Shown here: positions 7,031 through 9,416 of the stretch, piece after piece
Position numbering within the stretch: position 1 is the stretch's first letter
Layout: each line of letters opens with the position of its first letter
Sequence record: OQ708376.1
Reading direction: 5' to 3' (one strand)
DNA: 64,000 nt
Translations under genes and position numbers: made by a program
Notes under the pieces: model-generated
Database searches by the model: none
The model's input: only the letters and a program-made list of their open reading frames with translations
What the model was told of the DNA's origin: nothing

Positions 7031-7056
7031 AAAGGGAGCCTTAGCTCCCTTTTTTT
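7031..7056. terminator. Bidirectional intrinsic terminator
   Basis: AGGGAGC-ctta-GCTCCCT with A and T tracts, between convergent genes. Confidence 0.8.
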
Positions 7057-7532
7057 ATATCAACCATATTTAATTTACCGTCCTTAATCAGCTTTCTAGC
7101 TTGCTTTACACGAGCAGTAGTGTTACTACCAGGGACAACTCCTAACCCTTCCAGAATCGCGTTTTGCTGTGTTGCTGGAAGCCTTTTAAACTTATTAACA
7201 TCCACAGTTAGTGCAGTGTGATGTATAACTTGTTCATCGTCAGGAATGCTGTTATTACGCTCTAAGTAATCAGCAAGATTTCTGAGTACCTCATATAATG
7301 GTTTATCAGTTAAGTGCTTCATATATCGATTGAAGCTGTTTTGTACCTTTCCTTCCCAAGCATTGACTTCATTTTGAAGAACTTGTCTACAATGTTGGTT
7401 ACCATAGTGGTAGTGATCCAGTACTGGTTTAGTTATTGGTTCTTTAATTATAGGATCTATTCCATTTTGTTTCTTTAGTAATTTGTTTCGATAGTTTGCA
7501 GCATCCTTACTATCTTTTAATCTTTTTTTCAT
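7041..7532 (-). CDS. gp49: Recombination endonuclease VII (Holliday junction resolvase)-like
   Basis: PVLDHYH...CRQVLQNEVNAWEGK matches the Endo VII LDHDH...RGLL...CN..EGK core; TATAAATA at 7563-7570 upstream. Confidence 0.75.
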   Translation of the reverse strand: MKKRLKDSKDAANYRNKLLKKQNGIDPIIKEPITKPVLDHYHYGNQHCRQVLQNEVNAWEGKVQNSFNRYMKHLTDKPLYEVLRNLADYLERNNSIPDDEQVIHHTALTVDVNKFKRLPATQQNAILEGLGVVPGSNTTARVKQARKLIKDGKLNMVDIKKGS

Positions 7533-7623
7533 AATTCCTCACCAAACTATTTGTTATCAAAATATTTATAGATTAGTTATTTGCAATATTTTAAGTACTT
7601 AATGAATATTTTTATAAAAATAG

Positions 7624-7652
7624 TGAGACAACTTTAAAGTTTGTGCTATAAT
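7624..7652 (+). promoter_or_regulatory. Promoter TGAGACA-N16-TATAAT driving the non-coding region
   Basis: Full match to the recurrent motif, with TGn extended -10. Confidence 0.75.
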
Positions 7653-7658
7653 GTTTGT

Positions 7659-8112
7659 TGTAGTAATGACAATCCTGTTGAATGCAGAAATGCATATAAA
7701 TTAGAACCTGATCCTATCGAAAATGTAGATGGCAGATGAGCAGTTCAACAGTGCGATGAGCAAAAGAAACCCGTTAGATGTGGGCATAGTTTGAACCCCT
7801 CACGGCAATGCGGCTCAATAAAGAACTCCGATAAGCATACAGAGAGTTCCTCGATAGACATATAAGGATCGCACCTTACCAGATTTGCTAAGGGAGTTTA
7901 TTAAGTGATTTTAATAAACAGCCTGAAGTTTGATTGTATAGACTTTCAGGTGAGTGTCAGGATGATTAAGACTGACGACCGTTGCACATGACTGCGATAG
8001 AGAGAAACAGAGCAACCCGCTTTCGTTCTTAATATATTTTTAAGAAATTCGCAATACAATAAATGCTGAAACCATCAGCGTCAAGAAATAGAGACTTCAT
8101 TGTCTCTTTTTT
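7659..8112 (+). ncRNA. Large structured ncRNA of unknown family, with possible RNase P-like core
   Basis: No ORF of 60 aa or more; about 41% GC over 7681-8040 by hand count versus AT-rich flanks; many helices; promoter upstream and terminator at 8090-8112. Confidence 0.7.
8090..8112 (+). terminator. Intrinsic terminator closing the ncRNA
   Basis: AGAGAC-ttcatt-GTCTCT followed by TTTTT. Confidence 0.6.
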
Positions 8113-8329
8113 ATTGTCTTCATTCCCCTGCGGGGGGATGAAAATGTCCTCAACAAATCCCGTCAAGTATTAAATCTTTTAAAGTTCTTTATAATTAATT
8201 TAATTAAATGAATATGAGTTACGTAGTAACGAATATTCTTCAGCTAACGAATGAAATGAGTTAGATGAATCCAATAATATTAAAATTAATCCTTTCATAA
8301 TTCAATTCAAATAATTCTGTAGTTTAAAA

Positions 8330-8359
8330 CCAAAAAAAAAACCAGCAACAATGTGCTGG
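8330..8359 (-). terminator. Intrinsic terminator of the gp26/gp51-like operon
   Basis: CCAGCA/TGCTGG stem next to a long plus-strand A run (U tract on minus). Confidence 0.6.
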
Positions 8360-8370
8360 CTATATGAAAA

Positions 8371-8580
8371 TTAGTGCTTCTCGTTTTGTTTTTTAATTTT
8401 TTTATTAAAAGACTTAACTAATAAGTCTCTATCTATTAATGGCATATTAAGGAGTGTTCCATAGTCAATGTTATCCATATATACAGAACATTCCATTAGT
8501 GCATTTTTGATTTCTGACTTATTCAGTTCTATCTCCTTCAGTACTTCTTGTATTTCTTCAGGAGATGACTGGAGAAGCAT
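8371..8580 (-). CDS. Small baseplate hub assembly protein, T4 gp51-like
   Basis: NMPLIDRDLLV resembles the gp51 C-terminal motif; coupled to the gp26-like gene. Confidence 0.45.
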   Translation of the reverse strand: MLLQSSPEEIQEVLKEIELNKSEIKNALMECSVYMDNIDYGTLLNMPLIDRDLLVKSFNKKIKKQNEKH

Positions 8581-9416
8581 TACTCGAAAAAATGACTAGG
8601 ATCATATTTTAGTCCATCAATTTCCCATTGATGATTACATCCATCACATTCTACTTCCATACTATGAGATACACCAATTTCAAGTACTTCATCCATTTTT
8701 TCACGAATTAGTTTAAGTACTCCCTTCGATTGTTGTCCAAGCCATTCATTAATAAATTCTTTTTCAACTACTTCATCACCATCTGGTGTTATAATTTTTG
8801 CAATAACTCCACCAATCATATCGAAGTTAAGTTGAGCCATGTTTTCAAATACTTCAGAAAATATTTTTACTTTTTCATCTTTATCAATATCAGCAGTTTC
8901 AAGAAACTTAGTCTTCTGCTGCTCACTGAACATGCGTTCAGCAAACGATGAATATTCTTTCCATGTCAGTGGTCTAAATTCTAAACGTAGTCCATTATCT
9001 AAATCAATTGATGGGATTTCTTCAAATGCTTGTGCAGTTTCAAGAAGATATGATAGATTACGTTCAAATCGACCTTCTTTTTCACATTCAGGACATACAA
9101 CGTTAATATCATATGTTTCTTCTTTAGAAGCAACTTTAATAGCAATAAGAAGCATTTCAACGTCATTTACATACAACTCATCAGCGTCAATTACATTAGG
9201 AACACAGTTTTCAATAACACGGGATACTGCATCTCCGTTTAGTAACATATCGGGGGTATTAAGTGTCATTTCATCACGTGCACTACGTGCACAAACTCCA
9301 CATTTGACACCTTTTGGACCTAGAACTCCTTCTTTATAAGGAATAACGCCGTTTGTAACTAACTTAGTACTGATCTCTTCAATTTTAGTGTACTTAGCAA
9401 GTGGATTCATAGCCAT
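8580..9416 (-). CDS. Baseplate hub assembly chaperone, T4 gp26-like
   Basis: NPLAKY, EMTLNTPDMLLNG, DVEMLLIAIKVAS, two CxxC pairs; TATAAATA at 9451-9458. Confidence 0.75.
   Translation of the reverse strand: MAMNPLAKYTKIEEISTKLVTNGVIPYKEGVLGPKGVKCGVCARSARDEMTLNTPDMLLNGDAVSRVIENCVPNVIDADELYVNDVEMLLIAIKVASKEETYDINVVCPECEKEGRFERNLSYLLETAQAFEEIPSIDLDNGLRLEFRPLTWKEYSSFAERMFSEQQKTKFLETADIDKDEKVKIFSEVFENMAQLNFDMIGGVIAKIITPDGDEVVEKEFINEWLGQQSKGVLKLIREKMDEVLEIGVSHSMEVECDGCNHQWEIDGLKYDPSHFFE

Follow-up and report, generated by a model that had tools for sequence, protein, structure and literature searches.

An RNA locus in an ORF-free gap of a jumbo coliphage genome

The window analyzed here is a 64,000-nucleotide (nt) stretch of sequence record OQ708376.1, and by sequence identity it comes from an Asteriusvirus jumbo coliphage of the 121Q/PBECO4 type: 831 bases spanning the locus in question are 100% identical to Escherichia phage vB_EcoM_CRJP21 and 99.4 to 99.8% identical to 121Q, PBECO4, G17, slurp01, and other Asteriusvirus jumbo phages (348 to 386 kb). 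The locus is a predicted RNA gene that occupies a gap of ~840 nt free of open reading frames (ORFs), with the Endo VII gene on one side and a small hypothetical gene and a baseplate hub gene on the other. An earlier note, made from the letters of the sequence alone, had proposed a large noncoding RNA at this position, either a highly divergent RNase P-like ribozyme or a new class. The comparisons described below show, at the level of sequence, that the locus belongs to a real, strand-specific family of pseudoknotted RNA genes that is modular, occurs in multiple copies in all RaK2-like jumbo phages, and can move between mobile elements; the RNA would be roughly 430 to 520 nt long.

As the note had stated, the gap lacks protein-coding capacity, with no ORF of >45 amino acids on either strand across positions 7540 to 8370, and its GC content is raised (0.41 to 0.44 at 7700 to 7999 versus 0.24 to 0.30 in the flanks). 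The gap is unannotated in most records, contains short “hypothetical proteins” in some, and carries a bare “repeat_region” in that of phage UE-S1. Short GenBank ORFs overlie copies of the RNA at L046:3300-3455 (121Q gp516), in SHEFM2K, in JP4, and in others. These ORFs are probably spurious, and the RNA family corrects database annotation in several records in which “hypothetical protein” ORFs span the RNA. The features of the locus, with helices numbered P1 to P14 and pseudoknots PK1 to PK3, are as follows.

7624-7652, + strand: promoter, with the −35-like element TGAGAC at 7624-7629, a 17-nt spacer, and the extended −10 element TGcTATAAT at 7644-7652 (consensus scan)
7659-8085, + strand: structured RNA body, with a 5′ domain at ~7675-7878 (P1 to P7) and a 3′ domain at ~7887-8085 (P8 to P14)
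7675-7682, + strand: 5′ strand of PK1, CUGUUGAA, pairing with the P3 loop (7744-7751); recovered by the covariation scan as well
7684-7695, + strand: hairpin P1, UGCA-GAAA-UGCA, seen by eye in alignments A2 and A3, with a low formal count (badly aligned)
7708-7735, + strand: hairpin P2, CUG/CAG at 7708-10/7733-35 plus 7714-18/7728-32, with the conserved loop GAAAAUGUA
7740-7754, + strand: hairpin P3, GCA/UGC, preceded by invariant AGAUGAG; the P3 loop (7744-7751) supplies the 3′ strand of PK1
7757-7817, + strand: P4, 7757-61/7813-17, 100% paired, with four pairs changing on both sides; encloses P5
7771-74/7802-05, + strand: P5, 100% paired, with an optional insert at 7775-7801
7823-28/7844-49, + strand: hairpin P6, GAACUC/GAGUUC, 96% paired, with six of six pairs changing on both sides
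7863-7878, + strand: hairpin P7, UAAGG/CCUUA, 87% paired, with three pairs changing on both sides; preceded by conserved GAUAGACAUA
7887-7895, + strand: conserved single-stranded GCUAAGGGA, in which AAGGGA is invariant in both clades (columns of alignments A3 and A5)
7896-7919, + strand: hairpin P8, with a conserved stem base and a variable interior
7922-31/7940-50, + strand: hairpin P9, with 9 of 10 pairs changing on both sides; its loop, AUUGUAU at 7933-7939, is the 5′ strand of PK2
7955-60/7972-77, + strand: hairpin P10, UGUCAG/CUGACG, 95.5% paired, with four pairs changing on both sides
7981-8053, + strand: core of the 3′ domain, with PK3, P11, P12, and P13
7981-85/8012-16, + strand: PK3, GUUGC with GCAAC (in the P12 loop), 100% paired, with three pairs changing on both sides
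7993-97/8049-53, + strand: P11, 99 to 100% paired
8000-04/8020-24, + strand: P12, 99 to 100% paired; its loop, AAACAGAGCAACCCG, carries a PK3 strand
8026-32/8040-46, + strand: P13, 86 to 91% paired
8054-8060, + strand: 3′ strand of PK2, AUACAAU, pairing with the P9 loop at 7933-7939
8065-8085, + strand: hairpin P14, GCUGA/UCAGC (stem 8065-69/8075-79), the register of which shifts between copies; includes repeat R1
8079-8085, + strand: repeat R1, CGUCAAG, adjoining P14
8090-8112, + strand: intrinsic-terminator-like hairpin AGAGAC/GUCUCU (8090-8107) followed by a U-run (scan), with five pairs changing on both sides
8117-8168, + strand: conserved 3′ block, with a C-run/G6 hairpin (8119-8128/8132-8142), then AAAUGUCCUCAACAAAUC, then repeat R2
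8161-8167, + strand: repeat R2, CGUCAAG, at the end of the 3′ block
7041-7532, − strand: Endo VII gene, one flank of the gap
8371-9416, − strand: small hypothetical gene and baseplate hub gene, the other flank of the gap

Covariation supports a fold held together by three pseudoknots

We scanned all column pairs for covariation in an alignment of 30 sequences and repeated the scan on 49 sequences, with recovery of the same helices. The 104 pairs of the resulting structure were then counted formally on the 30-sequence alignment (A3) against 500 shuffles and slid controls, which serve as comparisons and are not probabilities. The structure as a whole was 85.7% paired, against 71.8% in the shuffles; 69 of the 104 pairs changed on both sides, against 45.3 expected; and its covariation score was 0.390, against 0.150, a value reached by none of the 500 shuffles (the slid controls gave at most 0.117). 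Compensatory changes are found in P3, P4, P6, P7, P9, P10, P11, P12, and P13, whereas P5 has one-sided changes only. The family profile (nhmmer) matches the window at 7629 to 8195 with an E value of 7.7e-139, and >100 positions in the RNA are invariant.

Several observations point to the + strand as the one under constraint. Read as the + strand, the alignment is 85.7% paired, versus 81.1% as the − strand, and it contains 240 G·U cells versus 103 A·C cells. Folded computationally, the + strand reaches −111 kcal/mol (z = −2.92), which none of 100 shuffles equaled, whereas the − strand gives a z score of −1.76. We favor the + strand because of the G·U wobble pairs, the position of the promoter, and the fold z score.

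The alignments were made with MAFFT (L-INS-i), which is not structure-aware, and P1, PK1, and P14 are undercounted in the formal count as a result. Because MAFFT aligns PK1 badly, we tested this pseudoknot without an alignment, searching each copy for at least six contiguous Watson-Crick pairs between the 5′ leader and its own P3 loop. Such pairing was present in 79% of 48 copies, and in 7.7% when loops were swapped between copies. It comes in at least 12 sequence versions, among them CUGCUUG/CAAGCAG, GUGUGG/CCACAC, ACAACGG/CCGUUGU, CUGAAUGA/UCAUUCAG, and CUGAAAGG/CCUUUCAG. The helix 7675-82/7744-51, which the earlier note had set aside as a competing pairing and a caveat to its own model, is therefore a genuine part of the fold. 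PK2 is 99.5% paired, with five of its seven pairs changing on both sides (97.7% paired in the 3′-domain set), and each of the four paralogs in phage 121Q has its own matching strand pair. In PK3, P11, P12, and P13, three to six pairs each change on both sides, and the same holds when clade II and bacterial copies (see below) are included; one G·U wobble in P12 is invariant. By these comparisons, three covariation-supported pseudoknots hold the fold together.

Around this framework the hairpins differ in their constancy. P1 varies in sequence and length, with a GAAA tetraloop in many copies (GGUAC-GAAA-GUACU and AGGC-GAAA-GCCU are two variants, CAAGGA..UCCUUG a third). The two helices of P2 are 92% and 80% paired, with two and three pairs, respectively, changing on both sides, and P3 is 100% paired, its middle pair being A-U, C-G, or U-A in 10 sequences each. 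L017, L026, and L042 have a UUCG tetraloop instead of the P5 insert, RaK2 has no insert there, and other copies have a different, longer one. Of 25 sequences, 24 form the three basal pairs of P8, using several types of pair (GCCA/UGGC, GAUGC/GCAUC, and GUUUCC/GGAAAC are variants), and the P8 interior holds an insert of 40 to 60 nt in most other copies. More generally, peripheral hairpins and inserts have been gained or lost between copies, while the unpaired stretches at the junctions, namely AGAUGAG, GGCAAUGCGGC, AUAAAG, GAUAGACAUA, AAGGGA, GACCGU, GAAAC, and ACCCGC, are invariant. A conserved submodule, (G)UACAAUAUAGAUCCGUC, lies within P8 in most copies and within P13 in others (e.g., L018:6313-6400 versus L044:6620-6680); absent from the window copy, it behaves like a position-swapping peripheral element.

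Of the local helices listed in the earlier note, 7823-28/7844-49 covaries, as do 7922-31/7940-50 and 7955-60/7972-77 in these limits and the base of 7896-7904/7911-19. The last one, 8065-69/8075-79, is weak: it forms a hairpin in most copies, but its register shifts and it is only 33% paired in the alignment.

Transcription signals and the 3′ end of the conserved unit

The claim that the RNA has a promoter of its own agrees both with the consensus scan and with the relatives, since all 30 unique copies share the layout TG(G/A)(G/A)AC (TGGAAC, TGAAAC, or TGGGAC), a 17-nt spacer, and TGnTATAAT. Transcription would start near 7659. A promoter class concentrated in the region of the DNA synthesis genes, with a TGAAACG −35 element and a classic −10 element, is described in the CBB paper (PMC5259590).

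The proposed terminator is likewise present, in the sense of a terminator-like hairpin at 8090 to 8107 followed by a U-run. Chance alone would give 0.5 terminator-like sites between 7000 and 8800, where the scan returned six. A perfect hairpin of at least 5 bp with a T-run occurs in 25 of 49 unique copies, so that the terminator is an optional element of the family; where present, it comes straight after the RNA body, and in the alignment it resembles an inserted peripheral hairpin between R1 and the 3′ block. In two paralog classes (L012:1873-2396(−), L015:6725-7271, and L010:42771-43312), a strong terminator-like hairpin with U6-7 lies right after the predicted start, before the RNA body.

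Position 8112, at which the earlier note had ended the RNA, is too short a limit for the conserved unit. When the four 121Q paralogs were aligned with their flanks, similarity ran from the −35 element to just past the second CGUCAA(G), at ~8168 to 8176. The 3′ block, which between its hairpin and R2 reads CCUCAACAAAUC, is kept in all four 121Q paralogs, in all of clade I, in clade II, and in the bacterial copies. Its C-run/G6 hairpin shows only C-to-U changes opposite the invariant G-run, which is what a + strand RNA hairpin would tolerate, although this is not proof of one. Neither of the two covariation scans found pairing between the 3′ block and the RNA body. We considered a small peptide, GGGGGGAUGAAAAUG..., from an ORF at 8063 to 8173 that covers the block, and rejected it; the relatives keep the nucleotides and read them in two different frames, and we therefore regard the block as noncoding.

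Repeats R1 and R2 change in concert (CGUCAG/CGUCAG, CGUCAAG/CGUCAAG, CUUCAAG/CUUCAAG in RaK2, and CGAAG/CGAAG in clade II; alignments A3 and A5), which points to a shared pairing partner or binding factor. A switch in which R1 and R2 alternate is possible in many copies. The window copy has no such switch, since its R2 cannot pair with the 5′ strand of P14.

The RNA matches no Rfam family and is not an RNase P RNA

Searched against Rfam 15 at gathering thresholds, the whole window gave no match. At E ≤ 10, the region 7400 to 8450 gave only weak, subthreshold matches to unrelated small RNAs and a 5.5-bit transfer-messenger RNA (tmRNA) fragment, mostly on the flanking terminators, and 11 further copies gave no match inside the element at E ≤ 1. 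At those same limits, neither this copy nor the other 11 matched the ROOL, GOLLD, OLE, HEARO, or raiA models. ARAGORN found no tRNA or tmRNA genes in the window. Our literature searches returned no description of this RNA family and no published transcriptome of these phages. The noncoding RNAs of phage PA5oct, found by transcriptome sequencing, are reported to lack sequence similarity outside the close relative MIJ3.

The earlier note had read into the locus an RNase P-like core that might process phage pre-tRNAs, with P1 at 7700-07/8026-33, P2 at 7740-45/7990-95, and P4 at 7776-84/8016-23. Two things speak for it, a tRNA cluster elsewhere in the phage genome (121Q, 72 to 78 kb) and a short resemblance between ACAGAGCAACCCGCUUU here and a segment of Escherichia coli M1 RNA that reads ACAGAACCCGGCUUA, as quoted in the earlier note. 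The proposed helices nevertheless behave like shuffled sequence. Together they are 61.0% paired, versus 60.9% in shuffles (A3), with a covariation score of 0.115, versus 0.113, that 187 of the 500 shuffles equal or exceed. Taken singly, P1 is 41.5% paired, P2 is 72.8% paired with no two-sided changes, and P4 (7776-78/8021-23 plus 7780-84/8016-20) has no two-sided changes. The 5′ strand of P4 (7776-84) falls within the optional P5 insert and is missing from L017, L026, L042, and RaK2, its 3′ strand is part of PK3 and P12, and the bases of all three helices belong to the covarying P3/PK1, P11, P12, PK3, and P13. None of the RNase P models (bacterial types A and B, archaeal, and nuclear) matched, either in this copy at E ≤ 10 (7400 to 8450) or in the 11 others at E ≤ 1. 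No pairing joins one end of the RNA to the other, and tRNA genes adjoin no copy. The resemblance to ACAGAACCCGGCUUA, with ACCCGC in the P12 loop beside PK3, is a short chance similarity. M1 RNA and this RNA are alike in size, in having long-range pseudoknotted pairings, and in the few bases around ACAGA..ACCCGCUU; they differ in that this RNA has no P4, no GAGGAAAG J3/4 motif, no P1 joining the ends, no covariance model match, and no covariation in the proposed core helices. Because there is no Rfam match and no covariation, because the P4 strand lies in an insert, and because the bases are used in other helices, we reject the RNase P reading, which is almost certainly wrong. The note's other suggestion, a new large noncoding RNA class, is supported by a conserved, covarying structure on one strand that has its own promoter and no Rfam 15 match.

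Other identities were considered and rejected. A guide RNA of the IscB/TnpB type would be expected to have a hypervariable 5′ leader, whereas the leader here is semiconserved; no such protein is encoded nearby, and HEARO was negative. The segment AGAUGAG-P3-CGA(A) recalls a hammerhead core, but U4 is replaced by A, one A is lacking before the next stem, there is no stem I, and Rfam gave no hammerhead match. CCGUU (F-box-like) and AGAGA motifs recall a T-box, for which Rfam gave no hit.

Paralogous copies occupy fixed positions in RaK2-like jumbo phages

Similar DNA was found in 71 to 72 phage records, all of them RaK2-like jumbo phages, at identities down to 67% and with two to five separate BLAST matches each. 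Their hosts are Escherichia, Salmonella, Klebsiella, Erwinia, Yersinia, Serratia, Pectobacterium, Cronobacter, and Xanthomonas. The window itself holds one copy and no paralogs. A match in RaK2 in a different genomic context led us to two annotation gaps in 121Q, both of which align with the window element over its full length, and profile searches placed the 121Q copies at ~90.3, 192.7, 247.4, and 326.6 kb, all on the + strand and 55 to 112 kb apart, the last being the window copy. When IMG/VR was scanned for exact matches to the best-conserved 3′ motif, which occurs in four stretches of 121Q, 34 stretches were returned, 27 on contigs of 345 to 378 kb and 7 on contigs of 23 to 174 kb. Copies are also co-oriented in GAP32, Serratia phage BF, and a 371-kb metagenomic phage. 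Copy D, the window copy, keeps its place beside Endo VII in 121Q, G17, UE-S1, and Munch, and its best matches in phages of Serratia, Erwinia, Yersinia, Pectobacterium, and Cronobacter lie at ~174 to 177 kb of the records.

Similarity between paralogs stops at the promoter on one side and at R2 on the other, with neither terminal inverted repeats nor target duplications. The next gene converges on the RNA in the window, in phage Munch, and at three of the four bacterial loci, so that there is no downstream cistron to regulate at these sites.

Genes of the homing endonuclease type adjoin copies at L008:41320-42108 (121Q gp170), L046:1520-2131 (121Q gp513), and L005:1513-2469 (Munch gp274). An annotated HNH gene, without a Pfam hit, follows 121Q copy A, an HNH gene precedes copy C, and in Munch an ORF with a DUF723/treble-clef domain is inserted between Endo VII and copy D. 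This distribution fits a role of the RNA genes as conserved landing sites for homing endonuclease elements. A further unannotated 2-kb stretch of 121Q, at 135,194 to 137,161 (L009:35194-37161), contains just two tiny tandem repeats and gave no Rfam hit at E ≤ 0.1.

A divergent clade and copies on bacterial chromosomes

A metagenome scan yielded 45 stretches, mostly RaK2-like, of which 7 match only the 3′ half of the profile and form a divergent clade II. Complete clade II loci have their own TGnTATAAT promoter and a different 5′ domain; they keep AAGGGA, P8 to P13, PK2, PK3, R1/R2, and the G6 block. With clade II and bacterial copies included, the 3′ domain is 91.3% paired, versus 77.6% in shuffles, with a covariation score of 0.512, versus 0.228. 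The clade II contigs are phage-like, with a tRNA-His guanylyltransferase gene and a weak head decoration match, and no cultured phage carried a clade II copy.

Three full-length copies were found in a scan of one genome per bacterial species. One, on the chromosome of Serratia fonticola GTA-SR07, lies beside a large serine recombinase gene and two ParB/RepB-like genes, at the edge of an element next to a duplicated rof gene and tilS. Another, in Serratia sp. 2723, comes right after a large serine recombinase gene, and the third, in a metagenome-assembled genome of Enterobacteriaceae, lies between thiM and a CI-like repressor gene. The bacterial copies each have their own promoter.

Among complete E. 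coli genomes, 2 of 5,426 have a copy. That of strain LR-29-1 scores 447 bits, has the promoter, the terminator, and the 3′ block, and sits in a 1.4-kb ORF-free gap of an island of ~10 kb that adjoins ffs (L095:15961-26305, NZ_AP027515.1). The island also carries a tyrosine integrase gene split by IS3, hypothetical genes, a DUF4326-mSLOG/DUF488/DuOB trio, and a DNA invertase gene. Only the ~550-bp module matches phage DNA, the best match being the Endo VII-side copy of Serratia phage BF at 80.6% identity, and the island could be a satellite-like or conflict island tied to jumbo phages. No plasmid among 72,556 carries the module, on which ground we rejected a plasmid-type origin.

Interpretation of the locus and competing explanations

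We favor, with moderate confidence, the interpretation that 7624 to ~8170 constitutes a self-contained gene, its product being a large RNA that has tertiary structure, belongs to an undescribed family, and acts in trans through its fold. The phage-typical promoter, with its TGrrAC −35 element and extended −10 element, would drive + strand transcription from ~7659, and the transcript would fold into the 5′ domain (P1 to P7) and the 3′ domain (P8 to P14), held by PK1 to PK3. From this copy, most transcripts would stop at the weak terminator at 8090 to 8112 to give an RNA of ~450 nt, and read-through would add the conserved 3′ block to give one of ~510 to 520 nt. The RNA might then act as a subunit or scaffold of a ribonucleoprotein (RNP), as a ribozyme, or as an RNA-only assembly of the ROOL/GOLLD kind, and its partner would have to be present in jumbo phage infection and in uninfected Enterobacterales alike. 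Such an RNA would be neither an mRNA leader nor an RNase P RNA. An invariant junction core with a variable periphery is typical of ribozymes and of the RNAs of RNPs, and we prefer a stand-alone, trans-acting RNA because of this pattern together with the copies' own promoters, the converging genes, the common terminator, and the capture of the module as a unit. The locus shows the predicted marks of an independent noncoding RNA gene, in that a promoter precedes it, its covariation is specific to one strand, and a terminator-like hairpin and a converging gene follow it.

Several observations count against this interpretation. No conserved neighboring or partner protein was found, the flanking genes differing at each copy, and ancient paralogs at fixed genome positions are what would be expected of a cis-acting element. 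Roughly half of the copies, 121Q copies A and B among them, have no terminator and continue into ORFs downstream; some paralogs have a terminator-like hairpin right after the start site; and the 3′ block, lying downstream of the terminator, fits a plain gene-plus-terminator arrangement poorly. The ends, abundance, and stability of the RNA are all read from sequence.

The dispersed, co-oriented copies raise the question of replication. T4 oriF and oriG, with a middle promoter and an unwinding element, and ColE1 RNA II are models for an origin module in which a folded primer RNA would stay hybridized to DNA at the G-rich 3′ block and the AT-rich DNA behind it and prime the leading strand, and plasmids with T4 origins are replicated and packaged by T4. 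Islands would on this account carry the module for replication or packaging by jumbo phages. The 55- to 112-kb spacing in 121Q, the constant place of copy D beside Endo VII, the promoter class that in CBB clusters near DNA synthesis genes, and the C4/G6 block with AT-rich DNA after the RNA all agree with such a role, as does the fact that the module is the sole phage-like DNA on an E. coli island without recognizable replication or transfer genes; jumbo phages are known, moreover, to transduce small integrase-bearing islands (PMC12595487). We still consider an origin unlikely, given that >100 invariant positions and three pseudoknots far exceed what a primer needs, that half of the copies have a terminator between the RNA and the G-run, that no plasmid in the set searched carries the module, that in bacteria it faces converging genes at an element edge, and that neither iterons nor an initiator gene is linked to it. 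Similarly doubtful, in our view, is a cis-acting leader, either a put/nut-like processive antiterminator or a riboswitch-like attenuator, perhaps with an R1/R2 switch, that would gate polymerase past the terminator and the 3′ block. The order of promoter, structured RNA, terminator, and conserved block invites this comparison, the concerted changes of R1 and R2 are those expected of two alternative partners of a single strand, terminator-less copies enter co-oriented genes (121Q copy A, genes 168 to 170; copy B, gene 416 and dam), and some copies have a terminator-like hairpin near the promoter as well. Yet the next gene converges on the window copy, on its Munch counterpart, and on three of the four bacterial copies, where read-through could produce nothing but antisense RNA; the window copy lacks the R1/R2 switch; known put elements and riboswitches are three to six times smaller; and the downstream genes vary among paralogs.

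A repeat acting at the DNA level with an incidental transcript, whether a recombination hot spot, a protein-binding site, or the remnant of a nonautonomous mobile element, would account for the multiple copies, the “repeat_region” annotated over part of the element in UE-S1, the direct repeats R1 and R2, and the homing endonuclease genes beside several copies. Against it stand the 69 of 104 pairs in which compensatory changes preserve pairing and the conserved G·U wobbles, including the invariant one in P12; such patterns reflect constraint acting on RNA, and on a single strand. The ends of similarity at the promoter and R2, without terminal inverted repeats or target duplications, argue in the same direction, and we regard a DNA-level repeat as very improbable. 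More speculative than the preferred trans-acting RNA, and itself unlikely, is the idea of a new catalytic or self-assembling RNA machine that RaK2-like jumbo phages would need in several position-specific copies (serving, for example, replication start or transcript processing) and that small islands in Enterobacterales have captured as a handle for replication, packaging, or induction by these phages. If true, a jumbo phage and its satellites would for the first time be linked through an RNA.

Relation to known systems and significance

The closest analogs by type are ROOL and GOLLD, orphan “ornate” RNAs of phages and prophages that are large and structured, are Rfam families, and have cryo-electron microscopy structures (bioRxiv 10.1101/2024.12.08.627333). 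Like them, this RNA is noncoding, >400 nt long, rich in helices and pseudoknots, carried by mobile elements, and its own transcription unit without a linked protein. It differs from them in lacking homology even at E ≤ 10, in being smaller, and in occurring in T4-related jumbo phages of Enterobacterales with two to five paralogs per genome. With T4 oriF/oriG and ColE1 RNA II it has in common a phage or host promoter, an untranslated RNA, G-rich and AT-rich DNA downstream, and several copies per genome, and an origin of that kind could explain capture of the module by islands; those RNAs, however, have no deeply conserved pseudoknotted core, and here the terminator often precedes the G-run and the module is on no plasmid. 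With HK022 put and lambda PR′-6S RNA/tR′ it has in common a promoter-proximal untranslated RNA, a terminator, and conserved sequence beyond, but it is three to six times larger and many copies have no co-oriented downstream gene.

Few large RNAs are known in which a tertiary fold is conserved, and every one discovered to date has brought new biochemistry to light, in the form of ribozymes, riboswitches, guide RNAs, and RNA cages. The present one should be easy to study: it has three pseudoknots with many compensatory changes and >100 invariant positions, and it is found in two to five copies in each cultured RaK2-like jumbo phage, several of which grow on E. coli K-12. The presence of the 550-bp module on integrated elements of E. 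coli and Serratia offers a direct test of a link between jumbo phages and island mobilization.

Two minor features of the surrounding sequence complete the description of the locus. A two-way terminator hairpin lies at 7031 to 7052, between a gp46-like gene and the Endo VII gene, and a − strand terminator at 8340 to 8361 closes the baseplate operon; between them they bracket the RNA locus.

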